Below are positions 15,436 to 26,858 of a stretch of 50,955 bases of DNA, piece by piece. Under the pieces are notes generated by a model. The model was given only the letters and a program-made list of their open reading frames with translations, was not told the DNA's origin and searched no databases. Positions within the stretch are counted from its first letter, which is position 1; each line of letters starts with the position of its first letter. Position numbers and translations under genes: made by a program. Origin of the DNA: Lenisia limosa (Eukaryota; Protista; Breviatea); the NCBI GenBank assembly GCA_001655205.1, contig LPNZ01008900.1, positions 1 to 50,955 of the forward strand, given 5' to 3'.

Positions 15436-18400
15436 CTAATCTTCGTCGGAATCAGAGGATTCTTCTACGTAACATCAGATTCAAGAAATGGAATGGCATT
15501 CAAAAGAACAATTTCACATCTCAACACAGCTCATTCTCACCATCTTCGTTTCCTTTCTGCTTGTTGTTCTGCTGTTGTTGTCCCTTGAACCATGCTTGAA
15601 CCTAGAAATTAGTACTGATTGTAATAAACATGAAAATTTGATGTCAATTAGTATTTTCGAAGTTCTGACTTCACCCTCTCCCACATCGGAGATCATGACA
15701 TCTTCAGCTTGGTTGAGTAGCATAGTGAGGTTGAATTTTGAGGCCTTTTCAACTGGAGAAAGACATTGCCACCACATTCGAACCTGTTCAAGACCACCGA
15801 CCGCACGGTTCGATTTCATGAGCTTCAAATATCAAACAAACGCAAAATCAACTAACCTTAGACTGCAGCTGATTGTATTCCATGTAAGTAGTCATGGAAT
15901 TGGCAATCACTGTCACGACCGAAATCCACACATGAAAGCCTTAAGTGTAATCGATGGGGTGGGGGTTACCGAAAGTTGCAAGAAGAGCACTGCAAGCTGA
16001 AAGAGAGTAAGTGATCCATTGCAAGGTCTTCAATTTGGTCTCAATTCGTCTGGTCTTGTGTGTGAAGTATTTGATCCCAGGTAACACTCTGCGAAATAAG
16101 TTGAAGTGAAGATTGTGTCACTAAACATACCTGAAAATGATATATTCCTCTGGCTGAATGTAATCCAGTGACTTCTGTGAGTACAAAGCAAGATGACTCA
16201 TCTAATATGTCAATGATTATCGTAATTACAGACATCATCCCCCCACTCACTCCACGGTGCTTTTCATCAGCCTCACTAAACGCATAGTTCTCCAAGCTGG
16301 TGATTGGTGGTGGTGAAACAAGGGGTTCGTTGAGCTAAGTGGTGAGAAACGACTCGTATTGACAAACAGGGTATTCATAGGCAGTCAGTCGGTCTGTGAA
16401 AATGTCATCAACTCCATCAGCAGAGGGCTAAAACATGAGTAACTGGAGGCATTTGGGGACCCACAATTGCGAGACTGCTTTCCTGGACATCTGACTCAAG
16501 GAGGGCCTGTGAAATGTTCTCTAACCGTTCAGCCAACAGAGCTTGACTGCGAAAATAAGAGCTATCGATATGGAGAGGCAAACCTTTCAAAACCCAGAAT
16601 GGCATAGTCGCCCTCAGAAGTTCTGTAGCGATAGATTTGTGAAAGAGTGGCCTCCGCGGCCGCACGGAGATAGATCCACTGAAGGGGTCAATCATTGGTA
16701 AGACAAAACAAACTTTGCTTCCTGAATTGAATCTGTTGTTTGCAGCCGTAATAACTCCAAGAAGAAGTGGGAGAACTGAGGCGGTGATGAAGAGACCAAA
16801 ATATCCAAGCTTCAACCCTACATACTGACAACCCAGGCCGAAAATCCCCATTCTCCTTCTTTGGGAATTTTTTCGAGGTCACCACTGTTTTCCAAAACAC
16901 TGTAGGTGATGGCAGAAATGGTAGTAATAATACCTAAAACGTTAACCCACATGTTAGAATAAGACAAACCAATCAAGAGAATCCAAATAAGCATGTTCTT
17001 GCTCATTGCCTTATGGCGCTTCGCATTGTACTGGTAAATAAGGAATCTATTCCAAGCAAGCATCAGCTGAGCGTCGTCTTCTCCTTCAACTGCTGCAGTC
17101 TTCCTTGCAGCTGTTTGACTGAGACTCTGTAGAATGTATTGTTCCAATGATTCAACCTAAGTGGTTAGAAAAGATCCTTTCAATCTAAACTCACTCCAAA
17201 TTCCGTTCGGAGATCGTAGACATAGAGGTTACCGTCAGCAACTACTTCCTCCACTTCAGCCTGAAGTGTGAGTGACTGCTGCACCGATGGATGAAATCGG
17301 TCATACAGTTAACCATTTTAAAAAGTTCGGTAAAAATATGATATTTGATGAGTGGACTATCTGTTATACGGTCAAATCCCCAAAAAACCTGTTGTCTGTG
17401 TATTTTGTGAAGCCCATCTGGGGTGGCGACAAGACGTGGTTTGGTCCGTTTGATTTCATCTAGTGGTCAAAATGTTTTACGAAAACGAGTAGGAACTACG
17501 TCATACAAATAATCATGAAAAATAGACACAACTAACCGATCAAGAGCTCAGGCTTGCTTGCCTTGAAGCGTGCGAATTCATCAACAAGTTCTAAAAAGTG
17601 ACACCGTTTTGTGAAAAGCAATCAAGTAGTGGAACAGACCTTGGATGGTCTTTCGATGGGTGTCATTGGGCTTAAGGAAGTCGAGATCTGGGTCATCTTC
17701 GGGTAGATCTGAAATGCTGTGTAGGCGAGCTTGAACCCCAACAGTAGAATCTTTCTTCGCAGCCTTATTGGCTCTGACGGCAATCTTAGCTTTGTCTTTG
17801 TCATCCTAATCTATCACAAACGACAGTTCACAAACTTTCTTTTGGATTTTGTCCAACTTCTTTTGTGCTTTAGTACCACCAGACAGTCCTAGAAAATGTG
17901 ACATAAGAGTATTTCACTAACGTCCAATTGGTTCCTCTTTTGGATCGCTCTTGGACTTTCCCTGGATACGACGCTGCATTTCTTTGATCATGTTTTTCTT
18001 CTTCTTCTCGTACTCAAAGAGGGTAGCAACGTTATCAGCGTAGTCGCCAGATCCATTGAAGATAATAATGGGTTGGCCTAGAACATAAAAGAACTTCATT
18101 ACTCCTAAAAGAAACTTATTACCACATTGGCTTCACCGTATTCTCCCCCACTCACCACCACGAACAGAATGCAACATTGTGTTCAGCGTACCCGCGGTTC
18201 CACCAACAACAACGAGAACGGTTGGGATAATCTTAGCATAGAACTGAAGCTGTTAATTGATAATGCCTCATACCGCTTCCAATTTGTAGCGCACACTGAT
18301 TTCAGCTCCCCAACTGGAGCCTGTCACGAAAATGAAGTGGCTGTGGTTTCGATCAATGGGGGCTCTAGAAAGTTATAAATATACGAGGCGCCAAACCCTT

Positions 18401-19588
18401 TGCCACAAGCCGTGAGGAAGGGGGGCGGTTCTTCACCATCCTTCTTTGCACGCATGTCCTTCTGACGGTGCTCGTAGACAAACTCCTGTCCCCTCATGCC
18501 TTGCAGAGGCTCACATCCCTTGGACATAGGGTAGGGCGACACCCTATATCATAACCGTAGTAATAATGCTTCTACATACTCGACCCAGCAGCCCAGCCCT
18601 AAAATATCTCTATTTAAACTAATCCCACAACCCATACATACGCCAAAAGGGGAACACTCTGAGCCCGTCCTTCAACTGCCTCTCCTGTGAGTTTCATGCA
18701 CCCTGACTCCATACCGCTGCAAAATAAATGCTGATATTGAAAAATGAGACAATAATAATTAATAAAGGTAGTATCAGGCCAACGCCATCAAGGCCAATAC
18801 GGACGTGATTATAAACTGCTAATTTATTGGCTGCTTGTATTCTGTGGATATTTATTAGATATGGATGCCACGCCCACCCAGACACGATCCATGCCTTGGT
18901 GTTGAGCGCGGACGTTACAACACCACGGCTGAAGAGGTTCTGGAGATTGATCATCATTCGATCATCGTCACTCTTCAGAGACTGCGCACCACCCGTGACG
19001 GATATGAGAAGCTGCACTGTGAGGCTGTGAAGTTCACAAACCTTAGGTCGCGGAAGGCCCCAGACATTATGAAGAACATTGTAGAGGTCCGCTGGGTTGA
19101 CAGTCTACGTGGAGGATGAGACATGATGACTCGAGACCAACTGGAGGGGTGATGAGGAACTTTGCTGATTTTCCATTTTCTTTAAATTTGATTTGTCCAA
19201 ATGACACATCTGGTCTCTGCAGGAAGGGGACTTCAACATCGTATATTCTAAACCCCGTGATATCCGAAATAGAATGTAAGGAGTCATTCATAGTGCCACC
19301 AACTTTTTGCCTGCTTCTCTACTCTGTGACATTTGAACAACTTGCCCCTCAAGCTGCTTGTTGCGGTTGTGGAATTGTTGGATTCGCTTGCCATACTCTT
19401 TGATCAGCTGTTGTTCGCGGTCGGTCGGTTTGGTTCCTGGTCTAAAAATGGAGGAGAGTGAATTGGGGAGCGAAGCACCAAATTTGACTCAAATAAGTCG
19501 GAATATCAACAACATAAACGATATCATACTGCAGAATTGATGAGACTTCAGGTGGTGGGGCTGAAGCCCTTGGTTGATCAGATGACAT
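15436..19588 (-). CDS. TRPM-type SLOG (LSDAT) domain fused to two SLATT-like 2TM modules (DUF4231-like then SLATT_1-like); roughly 25 introns
   Basis: Spliced SLOG: RPDVSFGQIKFKENGKSAKFLITPPTVNPADLYNVLHNVWGLPRPKLLISVTGGAQSL...AWIVSGGMESGCMKLTGEAV...SVPLLG...IDRNHSHFIFVTGSSWGAEISVRYKLE...PTVLVVVGGTAGTLNTMLHSVRGGQPIIIFNGSGDYAD. C-terminal half: LAWNRFLIYQYNAKRH...(2TM)...NNRFNSGSKWIYLRAAAEATLSQIYRYRT...LDYIQPEEYIIFRV...(2TM)...MTTYMEYNQLQSKLMKSNRAVGGLEQVRMWWQCLSPVEKA...DVQAW. TAG at 15436-15438. Confidence 0.88.
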
Positions 19589-19880
19589 TCCGCTTCTCTC
19601 TTCTGCCCTTCTTCTATACTGATTACAAGCTAAATTCCTAACTTCTAATTGACTTCAAGGTTGCTACCACTGTGAAAAAGGCCCGTGCATTTTTTTTACA
19701 ACTGAGTCTCCGCGACCGGATATCTATTTTGTTCCTTTTTCCTCCACCTCTCTTTCTCTCTTTTCTGTCGATCTTGTGATATTGTATTATCATCCAAATA
19801 TTACAAGCGTAGTTTAGGAATAGGATTTCAGTTGGATAAAATAGTTAGATGAAAGAGACTTATTGTTACTTTGATGCAAT

Positions 19881-22800
19881 ATGACCATCACTCTTCGTGA
19901 GCATCAGGTGGAATGTGTCAACAGAGCCAAGGATAAGAATGCTCTGATTGTGAAAGACACTGGTACCGGAAAAACCTTCGTGGCTGCAGAGGTAAGTTTG
20001 GGTTTTTCATGGCTGACATTCAGATTGCCCACCAAGCCCTTATCAGATCCGAGTTTGGAACCGAAAATCCGTTAACTCAAATTTTCTTTCTTGTCAAAAC
20101 TACAAATCTTGTTGAGCAACAGGTTGGAATGTTAGGCTTAGGTTTTAAATACCTAGGCTGCCAGCTTTGAGCAGTATTTTGAAGGTCGGAATCTCAGCAA
20201 TAATTGTGTTGGACGAGCCCATGGTTTGCACTATTCATTTTGCCCTTCATGTTTAATCTTTAGGTGGATGTACGTCTGAAAAAATACAAGGAATGGTGAG
20301 TAGTGTTGTGTTTTCGGTTATTTATTGAACCAAGAAGGCTCTCGTTTCTACTTTTCAGGGTCTGTTCACAGTTTAGCTTCGAAGATGCGCTGTTATTGTC
20401 TTAACTGCTGGATCATTTATGAATTACATTAATAAAAAGTAGTGCTACCGTACTCTAAAGTGTGAAACTCATTTTCATAGAGACGTAAACTTGTATAAAG
20501 TGAGTTTAGTTATCCTTGATGAGATTCATAACGCAACAAAGAAAGATGACTTCCTGGTAGTAAGCGGGTCTAGTGGTTTATTGCTGTTAGAAATGATAAC
20601 AGACGGGGTTTTTTTTTAAAAAAAATTCAATTTAAAATTTTCGTGATTAATTTGAAATTCACTTCCACTTCCATTTTAGCTGAAAAGTGACATCTTTATT
20701 TAAATTTTCAATCAATATTTTGAGTGCTGAAAATCTACGACTTGGATAAGTAATTGATAACAATCTCGCTATAGGTCTGTCGAGAGGTTCATAAAGTATG
20801 GGAAACTCGCGGAACAAATGCGCACCCACAACTTATCGGCTTCACAGCAACACCTGGTTTGGTTTTCTCCCCTATCTTTGTTATTGTTTAGGAGATAATC
20901 AAAGGAAAATTTACAAGCTGAAAACAGAAACAAAACGTAAGTGACATTGTCTATTGTTAACCACGGTTCAGTTGATCTTGTATACAACATCACGACAAAC
21001 GAACCAGTATCAAGGGGCCAAACAGAGACTGTTGCTCTCCAATCAACTAACTACGAGCGAGTTCTTTTGAACGTACTCTCAATGGAGGTTTGCAATTCAC
21101 CGGAAGACTGACCGTCTTTTTAGTTTTGGACAATCGTAAAGGATATTGGAGAAGGTTTAGATTTTCTCAATGTGACAATTCAACTCAATGACTCATTTGA
21201 GGCAGCTTTACGTGGCTACTTGTTAACCTCCCTTTGTGTAAGAGGATCTTCATGTGCAAACCTTGAAAAAAAATTTTACTCCTAGAATGAGGAGAAACCA
21301 AAGCCTCTAATGCAGCTAGCCTTTATTCACCAAGTATACAACTGGACAAAACACAATGTTTGGGGGATTTTAAAGTACTGTCATGTATTTACCTTGGGAC
21401 ACTTGTAAACTACAAACAGATGACTTCATATAGATTATATATACTATTTGTATAATATATGTATATATATTATACTATATAGCTATATGATATACTTATG
21501 TCATTGCATCTAGAGTCCGAGAAAGGCATTTGAGGCTCTTCAATGTTGTCAATCCAACAATGTCGATTTTCTGAAGTTCAAATACCTTACACCTGTATGT
21601 ATTGAGTCAATTGGGATTTATTTTCAGGAGTTAAATGGGCTTCTTTCCAAATTCAGTTCCCATTCTTTCCCTAAATTCAGTCAGAAGGTAAATACTAATT
21701 ACAGCCAACTTATGACTAGATTGAAATGACACATTCCAAAATCTCTAAAGCCATGACTGGTGAATTGTATGGAAACAAGAACACAAGTAAATTTTCGTAA
21801 TATCTCACATATCTCCCACTTCAGATCAATCTGCGGACTTAATTAAGCCTATTTTGGTGATTGTTCAGCAAAAAGAGATGGTTTACAACCTTCTACATTC
21901 GTTTTCAGGGTTAGGAGAAAATCTTTGTAATCCTATCAGGACAATGATAGATATCTTAAACCCCGTCTTCATGATCGGTCAGGACCAGTCACCATCGAGC
22001 CGGTTTCTGTGGCACAAGCTGCTCACTCACTTCCATATTGAGGTAGTAAGATTGTTCTATTGGTTCTAAACCTCTAGGGATCAGATATTGCATTTAAAGC
22101 TGGTCAGTCAATCGGAGGACAGAAAGAAGCACTGAGTTCTCTCAAACTCCCTCTTAAAGTTTGTGTACTTTAAGCACATGTAATACCTACAATTATCTTG
22201 TATTTTATCATATGTGGATATGCATCATTGTCTCATAATAATATTAAGATGCAAATGCTAACACTCAGGAAAACGGAAGTCGACTGATGGTGGCCACCGC
22301 AATTGGGGCTGAAGGTGTTGATCAGTCCTTCAAGCTTGTTGTGGTTTTTGATGAAATCCCTTCTGCCACAAAATTCAACCAAGTAGGTTGCGTTGTAGCC
22401 TAATTCGTGTAGACAATTGGAAGAGTGAGAGATGTTGACGGTAAAGCAATTTGCTTGACCGACCCCCCTGTAAGTCTTCACCCAGCTTGATTTATTCATT
22501 GTTAGGGAATTCACCGAATTGAGCGATTCAAACAGACCAAATCAAAGCTCAAAACGAATATGAATGCCGCAAAGGTTGGCGGCTCTTGTTTGTGACATCC
22601 AGATGATGACAGGTCCCGCAGACCCTGATGAAGAACGTAGACCTAAGAGTAAACGTGTCAAGTCAAAAAATAAAAATGTCATTGCTGCCAATAAAGTAAG
22701 GGGTTCAGGCACAAATAGATATTTTGCGATCAGGACTTACCCTTTGGCACCTAATTTTAATGAGTTAGTTCACATTTGTTGAAGTTGTCAAACAATTGTT

Positions 22801-25083
22801 TTGGCCACGCTTATTTTCCAGGACCATATTGCGCCTGCCAAAATTCCACTTCGTCGCAACTTCGACCGCGACCCATCGCAATTCCAACAGGACTCCCCCC
22901 AAGAAGAAACGCCAAGCACCAGCTCTTTGGAGGAACAGTCCGAGGGCTTCAGTGACATTGGCACCTGCAGCACACTCCAGGACGAGTCTGATGGTGTTGA
23001 CGACATTCTGGACGAAATCCACAAAAGAACTTTGGAATTATTTCAAAATGGCTTCAATGATTCTGATGGTGAAACTGAAGAAACGCTTTCGCTGCTTGAT
23101 GAAAACTTAGACGCGTCGGTTTTGACTTCATCAGACGCAGTTGAAGAGCGAACTACTTCCACTCTCTTGAATGAAGAAGGTAACACATTCCTTGACTCTT
23201 ATACTTGCTTAGACGAAATCTTATCAGTAACAACCGTAAACTCCGAGCTTTTTGAGCAGGTGTTGCGAGAGGAACGCGAAAAGAAAATGAGAAAGGCTCA
23301 GAAAGCCCTCGTCCCGACTCCCTCTGGTAAGCAGCGTTTTTACAACTTACCATGTAGAAAGCTCCTATGAGGAAGCCACTGAGCTGCCGAAAAGCCTATT
23401 TGTCGACTCACTGTGCGAAAAACAATACTGTCACCCTTATCCACAATCCAAAGACACTTCACAGTCCTCCAATGAGTCTGAATTCCTCATCCCCAAGCAA
23501 ACTCCTCCTTCAGAATCAGGCGCTTCTGTCCATATCCTACCAGATCCTAGCAAGCCAGCTCCACCACGAGAACTTGAGCCACTTGCTGACATCCCTTTAC
23601 AAACACAGCTCACATCTCCATACATTCCTTCTCACCAGACACAGACCACCAAGCCAACGCAGGTGTCACCGTTCACTGCCAAAAAAGACCCTTTTCAGCT
23701 TTCACAAAGCGTGGTGTCAAGCGTTATCTCTCTAAAAAACAAGCAAAATCAGGTTCAAATTCAAATGGACCCTTTCAACCAATCAAGAATACAGATTTCA
23801 CCAAAGGGCAGAATTACTGTTCAGAATGGCAAACCTCAAGCTCCGAAGCATACTCCTTCGTTTTCCAACCCCAGCCCCAGCCTTAACGACCTTCTAAGTA
23901 CGGCGGAAAAGGTCACACCTGCACCGTCACCAGCCACACCATTCTCCTCCGCGCCAGCAAAAAAAGAAGAGGCAACTAAGACTCCAGAACCTCGTAGGTC
24001 CACCATTGCTAAACGCTTTAGCCCATATCCCTGGTGGCAAAATTCCCAGGAATATCCTGTCAGGTGTTGTTGACGACAGTCCTCAAACAGTGGAATTCCT
24101 CCAGACTCTGATTCAGCTCTACTCCGAAAAGAATAAGGTTGTCTTGATAAGGTTATCATAGTTTAGCTGTCGGATAATAACATGAACGCAATCAGTAACT
24201 GTATGTCTGAATGGACTCGTGCCAAATGGTCAAAGCCGGAGTATCGTTACTCAAAAAGTGGGGAGTTTCGTCGCAGTTCACAGTATAGGCCAACTCAGTC
24301 CCACTTTATGGGTGGCTACTCTCCTGATCCGCGCGCCTGGTATGTTAAGCCACAGTCTACAGTCTTACTGTTAAGGGGCTAAAAAGGCCAATGAAGAGTG
24401 CAAGGGGGAGCCAAGTCATGGCGCAAGGTGTGTGTTGAAAGAAGCAACATCTGATACGATTATTGGTCTTCATTACGGCATGATTGTTCAGATGGTGGGT
24501 GACTGAAAATCCGCATCCTATTCTCAATGTCAAGTCTGCTGCCAATACCAGTAAATCTGAGGCTAAAAATGTTGTTTGTGCTGTAAGTTCCACTGTTATG
24601 GTTCCTGTTTATTCCCAAGGTTGCTCTCGTTGCCAATATCGCTCTGTTCCCCCTAAACTCACAGCAGGTTTGTTACAATACCTTTTTTCACTTTAGATAC
24701 CACCGCTGCAGAAAGATGTTCCAACACCATCAGCTTCAGTATGTTGGATTTTCATTTTACATTGTAGCCTCCTATTAAAGATGCCCCAATGATATTTGGA
24801 GTGAAACCTGCTTTGGAAAACCCCCAGGTTAACTGTTATTCTAATAACCAGACAAAATTTAATGAATTGAAACAAAAGTACCCCCATCTTTCTATTGCGC
24901 TTTCTCTTGATTCAGGTTAGCAATTTCTGCGGTTACAGTTTAGGATCACAGGCTACCAAAGCCTCCGCTTGTTTCATGTCACCAACCCCGTTCCAGTACC
25001 CATTTGACCCATTAATCTTCTCAAATGGAAAAACGGTGCATCAAACGGTACATGAGATTCTCTTTTACTTTATAGAAACATGA
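19881..25083 (+). CDS. RIG-I/Dicer-class (SF2 DExH) RNA helicase with a long disordered linker and one or two putative C-terminal dsRNA-binding domains; no RNase III
   Basis: Q motif LREHQ; Walker A DTGTGKT (19956-19976); DEIH (20518-20529); motif III PQLIGFTATP; motif IV ILVIVQQKEMV; GQSIGGQKEALSSLK; motif V RLMVATAIGAEGVD; motif VI FNQ/TIGRVR. C-terminal segments NAISNCMSEWTRAKWSKPEYRY...SKSEAKNVVCAVAL and ENPQTKFNELKQKY are dsRBD-like. Confidence 0.85.
21425..21500. repeat. TA-rich low-complexity tract in a helicase intron
   Basis: catatagattatatatactatttgtataatatatgtatatatattatactatatagctatatgatatac. Confidence 0.75.
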
Positions 25084-25235
25084 TGACAAGTATCTGATCA
25101 CTTTTATGTCTGGACCCATGAAAAGTAAAAAAATGGCAAAAACCCATGTCTGCCAAGCCTTGATCGACTTTGTTGCTAAATACATGGAAATATCATAAAC
25201 AAGGCTCGTTAACACCTTCGCTCCTGTTCATTTAG

Positions 25236-26550
25236 TTACTTTCTGGCTTTGGCTCGCTTCGAATGCTGTTCTTCTTTTACCCGTTTCTTTGCTGTGTTGA
25301 CCATTTCTACGGACTTATTGTAGATGGAATCCCAGTCAGTGTAGCCTATGATCGTAAATAACCAAAGAACCAACCCTTTTCTTGCGCATCCTGTTCCTTT
25401 ACGAAACAATTGATATCATGGGCCACCATCTAAAATGGTAAGGAAGGAAGAGTCTGACTTTCAACACTTGCGTGTTATCAAGCCCTGAGGCTTTGGTACA
25501 TTCCATACAATGGCTTGCTGCGGGAACAACAATCAATTTTTTGGAAACATTTATTTCCTAAACAGAATTACTCAAAATGTCATCAAACTTCAAAAATTGT
25601 CCGAATAGCACTATGATCCATCATTGAATCTCTTGAGCCAGTCAGCAAAACGACAGGCAAAATAGAGTCTAAAAGAGGCTGTCCTGGGAGGTTGGATGAG
25701 AAAAATAATGTGACATACTTCTAAGCTCCTTGGCACCAGGCGGTTTGAGGGGATAGTTCAACAACACTGTACACTGAAATCCATCATCACCTTAAGAGCT
25801 TACAAGGAGTGGAGCAGCACCTCTGGGTGTTTCAGCGTCGAATTCATTTTTGGACTCATCATTAACCCCAATACTGTACATCTGACATGCCCTTCCGCCC
25901 ATACTACAAAGGTAAACTGAAGAACCTTCATACCTCTGTCCAGCTAATACAACCGCTTTACAAGGGTACTTTCCACTTTGACTCAAAAGTGCATGTCCTT
26001 GTTGAATATCTTTCTAAACAATCACATTATTGCAATTCTACCATAAGCGCAGGCATTCTTGCAGGAGGTTGCTTTGGTCCCTTGTTTCTGTAGGCTAACA
26101 GGTAAGATACTCACAAAACACTCACCAAAGTTCATCCTAATGACAAGGTATCCAAGGTCGCATAAGTTCTGACTTAGTTTCACAAAACGGTCCTGTTCAT
26201 AATTGCCTCCAGCACTACAATTTATCACACACTTCTAGACTACTGGCAACAAAGACAGGTTTGAAGTGGTTTGGAAATCCGACATGGCCCTCAGCCGGAC
26301 CCTTACCGAGATCTTAATTTATTACAGTGAAGTGACCCACAGACCCATGAGTTAAGAGTACACCAATCGTATTTTCATCGTAGTTGCTAGGAACAGACTC
26401 GTGGAAGACCAAGGCTGCGTCTGTATCTAGCAGATTATATCATCAAATTCAGACTGTATCCCTCCTTTGGTTAACATTTTTATACTAATTCTAAGTGTGG
26501 ATATATAAGCACCCACCCTTAGTTCCAGACTTTTTCTTAGTCTGTGGCAT
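25236..26550 (-). CDS. TEX30-like (KANSL3-type) alpha/beta hydrolase
   Basis: Spliced IGVLLTHG/AGGNYEQDRFVKLSQNLCDLGYLVIRMNF...AVVLAGQ/SMGGRA (nucleophile elbow GxSxG)...LLNYPLKPPGAKELR, matching the recalled TEX30 pattern LTHGASG...GGRSMGSR...ISYPLH. TAA at 25236-25238; start tentative. Confidence 0.75.
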
Positions 26551-26858
26551 GCTGAGAATGCGTGGAGGGGGGTGCTCTCTGCTCCTGATTAAAAGACTTT
26601 CTCCACCTTCTCTAGTTATCAAATACTACAATACTACTATGTTAAATTTTGGCCAAAAGAGGCGGGNNNNNNNNNNNNNNNNNNNNNNNNNNNNNNNNNN
26701 NNNNNNNNNNNNNNNNNNNNNNNNNNNNNNNNNNNNNNNNNNNNNNNNNNNNNNNNNNNNNNNNNNNNNNNNNNNNNNNNNNNNNNNNNNACAACTGAGA
26801 CAGACTGAGAAAGAGAAATACAGAGATACACCTTGAAAATACAGAAATAGGCAAATCA

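Follow-up and report, generated by a model that had tools for sequence, protein, structure and literature searches.

A divergent helicase gene of the Hef/FANCM-Dicer-RIG-I clade in Lenisia limosa with a long low-complexity tail and putative dsRBD-like modules

The subject of the present study is a predicted helicase gene on the + strand of a 50,955-nt stretch of genomic DNA (the window) from the breviate Lenisia limosa (GenBank assembly GCA_001655205.1, contig LPNZ01008900.1, positions 1 to 50,955). In the initial annotation, which was made from the sequence alone, positions 19881-25083 had been described as a helicase of the Dicer/RIG-I class with two segments resembling double-stranded RNA-binding domains (dsRBDs). 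The exon-intron structure, the domain content and the relatives of this gene were analyzed here. The parsimonious reading is that of a single gene at 19881-25198, which would comprise approximately 31 exons and code for approximately 1,150 residues, and whose predicted product can be placed solidly in the Hef/FANCM-Dicer-RIG-I clade of superfamily 2 (SF2) helicases.

Gene structure and transcription

The region of the gene has a GC content of approximately 36-45% and contains no long open frames. Exon chains were determined by a Viterbi search with codon and splice-site scores that were trained only on exons upstream of position 23990; a version of the model without penalty was discarded, as it over-split the sequence into exons of 3-12 nt. 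The helicase part (19881-22469) was robustly recovered and consists of approximately 20 short + strand exons joined by GT..YAG introns of 28-215 nt. Between 19992 and 23357, 19 introns were placed with confidence (28-215 nt, mostly 30-36 nt). All 19 start with GT and end with YAG, never with AAG or GAG, and most have a G at position +5. As no confident intron ends otherwise, a candidate 36-nt intron ending in AAG and further AAG acceptors were discarded. Most introns of the gene fall into the range of 28-48 nt, and no GT-TG or GT-AC micro-intron was required for the model. The 42-nt intron at 20439-20480 is in frame with both neighbouring exons and carries a TAG codon; left unspliced, it appears as a premature stop in the helicase immediately upstream of the DEIH motif. 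The features of the gene model are the following.

19881-19991, + strand: exon 1 with the start codon, the Q-type motif LREHQ and motif I (DTGTGKT); open frame with GTAAGT donor
20024-20122, + strand: exon 2 with motif Ia (FFLVKTTNLVEQQ); linked in frame to exon 1 via a 32-nt GT..CAG intron
20157-20295, + strand: exons 3 and 4 (AASFEQYFEG.. and GCTSEKIQGM); donor of exon 3 ambiguous (20184, 20205 or 20223, all frame-keeping)
20377-20559, + strand: exons 5 and 6 with motif Ic (IVLTAG) and motif II (DEIH); Pfam DEAD match on this piece (E=0.05)
20775-20856, + strand: exon 7 with motif III (LIGFTATPG), from the exon chain
20892-21786, + strand: exons 8-14 with an insertion of approximately 215 aa between motifs III and IV, from the exon chain
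21444-21484, no strand: AT-rich simple stretch within intron 21358-21513 of the model
21825-22158, + strand: exons with motif IV (KPILVIVQQ) and the GQSIGGQKEAL block, from the exon chain
22269-22382, + strand: exon with motif V (VATAIGAEGVD); Pfam Helicase_C match (E=0.07)
22413-22469, + strand: exon with motif VI (Q|TIGRVR), downstream of the 30-nt intron 22383-22412
22506-22695, + strand: two post-core exons with a basic helix-like stretch and a patch resembling a nuclear localization signal (NLS), RRPKSKRVKSKNK (22636-22674)
22822-23326, + strand: large acidic tail exon of 168 aa; codon score +73.5 bits, strong splice sites
23358-23993, + strand: large Ser/Pro/Gln-rich exon of approximately 212 aa; codon score +73 bits
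24064-24257, + strand: tentative exons VVDDSPQTVEFLQTLIQLYSEKNK and, after a 29-nt intron, LSDNNMNAISNCMSEWTRAKWSKPE.. with a string resembling dsRBD helix 1; from the Viterbi chain
24492-25047, + strand: tentative small C-terminal exons at 24492-24570, 24697-24738, 24768-24827, 24852-24915 and 24944-25047; from the low-penalty Viterbi chain
25076-25198, + strand: last exon with KSKKMAK..ALIDFV and the stop codon at 25196-25198; acceptor score 8.8

Downstream of motif IV, the splicing is ambiguous up to the GQSIGGQKEAL block (21910-21939 and 21977-22098): a possible extra intron of 30 nt, in frame and stop-free, lies at 21910-21939, and an F-x-x-GQ string occurs twice (FMIGQ and FKAGQ). The 3' end of the Ser/Pro/Gln-rich exon is uncertain, with either a donor at 23994 or an open frame that runs to the stop codon at 24071-24073.

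When a low intron penalty was applied, the best chain extended to the stop codon at 25196-25198 and comprised 31 exons and 1,149 aa. Extension past 24700 gained +24.3 bits under the lower intron penalty and +4.5 bits under the higher penalty. When the downstream DNA was shuffled 150 times with its dinucleotide content preserved, neither value was reached in any shuffle (maxima 13.1 and 1.5 bits, respectively). Therefore, real + strand exons go on in phase past 24161. The intron linking the two parts (24138-24166) is typical, with a length of 29 nt, GT..TAG borders, a donor score of 5.4 and an acceptor score of 6.1. Weak sites occur further downstream, namely the donors at 24241 (score 0.0) and 25048 (score 1.2). 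A single transcript would span the gene from the helicase to the C-terminal tail. Of the words sampled from 19700-25600, a share of 0.32 was present in a polyA RNA run that belongs to the study which produced the DNA. This is about the expectation for spliced exons alone and speaks for transcription of the gene.

Helicase core and insertion

All seven helicase motifs quoted in the initial annotation were recovered on the + strand by three-frame reading, each in its own short exon: LREHQ (19893-19907), DTGTGKT (19956-19976), DEIH (20518-20529), FTATP (20841-20855), GQSIGGQKEAL (22102-22134), VATAIGAEGVD (22290-22322) and QTIGRVR. The latter is readable only when the 30-nt intron is spliced out, with the Q encoded at 22380-22382 and TIGRVR at 22413-22430. 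In the spliced model the SF2 core is complete and occupies residues 5-496, where the Q-type motif (residue 5) and motifs I (26), Ia, II (DExH, 137), III (173), IV, V (460) and VI (490) follow each other in the usual order. The Pfam families ResIII, DEAD and Helicase_C each matched one exon. Motifs III and IV are separated by approximately 215 residues, split over seven exons (8-14), at the position of the HEL2i insertion. The pieces of this insertion gave no match in Pfam or in the PDB, and it has no recognisable relatives.

Position within the helicase clade

Similarity searches were performed with single exons or open pieces as queries, each unspliced. Exon 1 matched Pfam ResIII with 25.8 bits (cutoff 22.5; E=1.1e-5). 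In the PDB, its first match was an ancestral Dicer helicase (E=0.0011), followed by animal Dicers (E=0.008), XPB (E=0.014) and RIG-I (E=0.05), with MDA5, DRH and plant DCLs at lower rank; neither Hef nor FANCM was among the matches at E<=10. Exon 2, the DEIH, motif III, motif IV and GQSIGGQKEAL exons and two insertion exons, each searched singly against the PDB, returned nothing useful. Among the 18,950 models of NCBIfam, the Hef nuclease was the best model for exon 1 (E=1e-4) and the sole match of the motif V exon (E=0.018). To our knowledge, Hef is the sole prokaryotic member of the Hef/FANCM-Dicer-RIG-I clade, and NCBIfam is therefore blind to the branches within it. Taken together, the PDB and NCBIfam matches make membership in the clade as a whole solid. 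The duplex-RNA-activated ATPases have been described as the closest kin of the FANCM family, and an insertion of HEL2i type occurs in both groups (PMC3590228).

The helicase does fall into the clade named in the initial annotation, as exon 1 matched Dicer and then RIG-I and MDA5; the same clade, however, includes FANCM and Hef, which had been listed as the refuting case.

Domains searched for and not detected

The annotated lack of RNase III, PAZ, CARD and zinc C-terminal domains was confirmed. A six-frame search of the complete 51-kb window did not reveal the RNase III signature E[FYW][LIV]GD, and none of the Pfam families RNase III, PAZ, Dicer_dimer, RIG-I CTD, CARD, ERCC4, HhH and FANCM-MHF_bd matched any of 20 open pieces at E<=10. 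In a Dicer, DUF283 and PAZ would be expected after the helicase; no Pfam match to them was obtained on any open piece, and the sequence following motif VI is basic and then of low complexity. Regarding the zinc-binding C-terminal domain of RIG-I, which has two CxxC pairs, the locus contains five CxxC strings, but all of them lie outside the frames that the exon model uses, and no match to Pfam RIG-I_C-RD was found. CARDs such as those of RIG-I and MDA5 are likewise missing, with the Q-type motif located already at residue 5. As a stop codon lies two codons upstream of the ATG at 19881 and the end of the upstream gene is only approximately 290 nt away, there is no room for CARDs.

The tail and C-terminal pieces gave no Pfam match to ERCC4, HhH2 or the MHF-binding region. 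Mph1 and Fml1 likewise have no nuclease, so that a missing ERCC4 domain does not by itself exclude the FANCM/Mph1 branch. A C-terminal helix-hairpin-helix of the Hef/XPF type was considered as a further candidate and rejected, as it had no support from Pfam or Foldseek.

Low-complexity tail and C-terminal region

The Ser/Pro/acidic tail of about 400 aa reported in the initial annotation was borne out by a composition count, which gave a length of approximately 435 aa with 37% S+P+T+Q and 15% D+E. Its first half is acidic and its second half is rich in Ser, Pro and Gln. The acidic exon (22822-23326) matched no Pfam family. For the Ser/Pro/Gln-rich exon, no relatives of 143-455 aa were found among 5.8 billion proteins, and none in JGI metagenome contigs. 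The basic patch RRPKSKRVKSKNK upstream of the tail may direct the protein to the nucleus.

Strings resembling dsRBDs are located at approximately 24190-24240 (NAISNCMSEWTRAKW..KPE), at approximately 24550-24570 (SKSEAKN) and at 25115-25180 (KSKKMAK..ALIDFV). The last of these, the best of the dsRBD-like strings, belongs to the exon 25076-25198, and the end of the second segment as annotated at 25083 has to be corrected accordingly. In a language-model search for look-alikes with the last exon, the ten best named clusters were all PF00035 (dsrm), with a score of 0.80 that is to be taken as a lead only; the recognition value was 2931, which exceeds what known families typically reach. The same search with the other C-terminal piece returned nothing. 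The AF2 model of 24167-24379 consists of a single helix at residues 3-21, in the position of helix 1, and is coil thereafter, which suggests that the exon ends shortly past the helix-1-like string. For the 40-aa fragment of the last exon, AF2 predicted a helix at residues 4-12, a loop and a helix at residues 18-39 (pLDDT 79) and no strand, and Foldseek found no match for this fragment.

Profile comparisons were extended to a home-made dsRBD profile built from the C-termini of 40 non-redundant RNase III proteins of bacteria and giant viruses, which represents the RNase III type only. An earlier set, made up of near-identical enterobacterial proteins, had yielded a narrow profile without signal and was widened with genome and viral loci. 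In the widened profile, the expected spots (PEYR and G-x-KSKK-x-AK) do align, at a non-significant level. Searches of the C-terminal pieces against the PDB returned no dsRBD.

Comparison with known systems

The combination of a Dicer-related helicase and a dsRBD in a stand-alone protein is known from Dictyostelium discoideum, where HelF (837 aa) combines a dsRBD (2-76) with DEXDc and HELICc and has no RNase III domain, and where the Dicers lack a helicase (PMC4894637). Loss of helF renders the cells hypersensitive to RNA interference (RNAi) (PMC2175303), and HelF has been described as a nuclear suppressor of RNAi. Judged by domain layout, HelF appears to be the closest described protein. Both are stand-alone protist helicases with DEXDc and HELICc and without RNase III, PAZ or CARD, and the NLS-like patch of the Lenisia protein would suit a nuclear role. 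The two differ in that the single dsRBD of HelF is clear, is recognised by SMART and lies at the N-terminus, whereas in Lenisia the helicase comes first and is followed by the 435-aa disordered tail, with putative dsRBD-like modules that are C-terminal and below profile detection.

With Dicer, the RIG-I-like receptors and DRH the gene shares the exon 1 matches, all core motifs and an insertion at the HEL2i position. The insertion, however, has no detectable similarity to theirs; DUF283, PAZ and RNase III distinguish Dicer, and CARD and the zinc C-terminal domain distinguish the RIG-I-like receptors, all of these being domains that were not found here. Hef, FANCM, Mph1 and Fml1 belong to the same clade, with Hef as the best NCBIfam model for two exons and the best PDB match of the motif V exon, and the arrangement of an N-terminal helicase and a long disordered tail resembles that of Mph1. 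In contrast to Hef and FANCM, the gene gave no match to an ERCC4 nuclease, HhH2 or MHF-binding region, and exon 1 favours Dicer and the RIG-I-like receptors.

Discussion

The gene is a divergent member of a known clade. With a probability judged to be slightly less than even, it is proposed to encode a Dicer-related, duplex-RNA-dependent ATPase without a nuclease of its own. The N-terminal SF2 motor, with all core motifs and an insertion of approximately 215 residues at the HEL2i position, is followed by the NLS-like patch and the low-complexity tail of approximately 435 residues. Small exons would then add a C-terminal region of approximately 190 residues, in which two dsRBD-like modules, both very divergent, would be located. 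Like HelF of Dictyostelium or DRH of nematodes, it would act apart from any RNase III by clamping or translocating on dsRNA. It would probably reside in the nucleus and modulate small-RNA pathways, without cutting RNA itself; Argonautes are present in the genome. A more specific version appears unlikely. In this version, a Dicer-type helicase was split from its nuclease and persists as a stand-alone motor on dsRNA in the nucleus, with a long flexible tether leading to two highly divergent dsRBDs at the C-terminus. It would either cooperate in trans with Argonautes and an RNase III that has no helicase, or serve as an RNA sensor.

A number of results weigh against the proposal of a Dicer-related ATPase. 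Exon 1 leans towards Dicer and the RIG-I-like receptors, but the matches of single exons, taken together, are divided between these and Hef. In the PDB, the sole helicase match of the motif V exon was Hef from Pyrococcus (1wp9, E=0.45); the earlier view that all motifs are of RIG-I-like receptor/Dicer flavour is too strong, because this exon matches Hef best. When the intron penalty was raised, the best chain was shortened to 958 aa, with its end at 24161. Pfam dsrm (PF00035) did not match any of seven C-terminal pieces at E<=10, and the spliced candidates scored approximately -1 bit (-0.1 to -1.8 bits) against the profile of 40 RNase III dsRBDs. The look-alike score of 0.80 was attained by one third of shuffled proteins, and in the AF2 model of the last-exon fragment a helix takes the place of the expected strand. 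Of the two dsRBD-like segments described initially, the strings are present, but neither Pfam, the home-made profile nor the PDB recognised them as dsRBDs. Folding of fragments yielded one helix in the position of helix 1 for one fragment, and helices only and no Foldseek match for the other. A dsRBD tail is plausible from the sequence; if it is real, its modules would be far from canonical.

The same evidence has to be weighed for three other explanations. A DNA translocase of the FANCM/Mph1/Fml1 type, that is, a nuclear enzyme which remodels stalled forks and recombination intermediates and which, as in Mph1 and Fml1, carries a long disordered tail and no C-terminal nuclease, is a possible though somewhat unlikely alternative. 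The Hef matches of exon 1 and the motif V exon, the NLS-like patch and the disordered tail would all suit it, and the HEL2i-type insertion occurs in the FANCM family as well (PMC3590228). However, the NCBIfam matches cannot separate the branches when Hef is the only prokaryotic representative, the PDB ranking of exon 1 (Dicer, RIG-I, MDA5, and no Hef or FANCM at E<=10) points the other way, FANCM-MHF_bd, ERCC4 and HhH gave no match, and the last exon is dsrm-like to the language model.

A doubtful case, less probable than a FANCM-type enzyme, is that of a lineage-specific helicase whose C-terminus is unrelated to dsRBDs and owes its likeness to chance similarity of short basic or helical strings, so that its substrate could not be guessed from accessory domains. 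Every dsRBD profile test was negative, the folds of fragments showed helices only, and the tail and the motif V exon have no relatives in large protein sets. On the other side, the ten look-alike clusters of the last exon are uniformly dsrm with a recognition value above that of typical known families, and the strings occur in the expected order twice. It is most improbable of all that two genes are present, with the helicase and tail ending at 24159-24161 (or 24071-24073) and a small dsRBD-like partner gene starting at ATG 24182. This ATG leads straight into the helix-1-like string, and the chain end at 24161 under higher intron penalties would agree with such an arrangement; yet the gap from stop to ATG would be 20 nt, compared with the approximately 290 nt of the upstream intergenic gap, the typical 29-nt GT..TAG intron connects the frames, and the chain remains in phase up to 25198.

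If the reading as a Dicer-related, RNA-dependent ATPase is true, the gene would be the second protist Dicer-related helicase apart from RNase III, after HelF of Dictyostelium, and the first such helicase with C-terminal dsRBD-like modules. We know of no description of a helicase-first, dsRBDs-last layout without a nuclease. The gene would then be relevant to the question of how a motor of the FANCM/Hef kind gave rise to the assembly of Dicer and of the RIG-I-like sensors. As an orthologue of FANCM/Mph1 it would be an ordinary gene. Either way, close relatives are missing from the very large protein collections, and a deep and little-known branch of the clade is therefore sampled.

Database records and neighbouring sequences

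An exhaustive search of 1.84 billion representatives with the motif V exon returned only a 38-aa open reading frame (ORF)-level call of the same DNA from an ENA metagenome contig; neither a close relative nor a spliced protein is therefore on record. A look-up of relatives for 18381-26698 likewise returned nothing. The 38-aa call (P0001) continues into an intron. A further ORF call of 328 aa on the ENA metagenome contig that contains this DNA (L002, 10278-11264, corresponding to 22564-23550 of the window) needs read-through of TGA codons. What the databases list as proteins of this organism are artefacts of reading without splicing.

The upstream neighbour, approximately 290 nt away on the same strand, is an SLOG-SLATT gene at 15436-19588. 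The adjacency of two genes with immune-type or conflict-type relatives may or may not be significant. Downstream, a run of N occupies 26667-26790. Provided that the ENA contig NODE_373 (26,757 nt) and the window are colinear, the end of this contig would fall into the N-run, and the window therefore looks as if it was scaffolded from such contigs.

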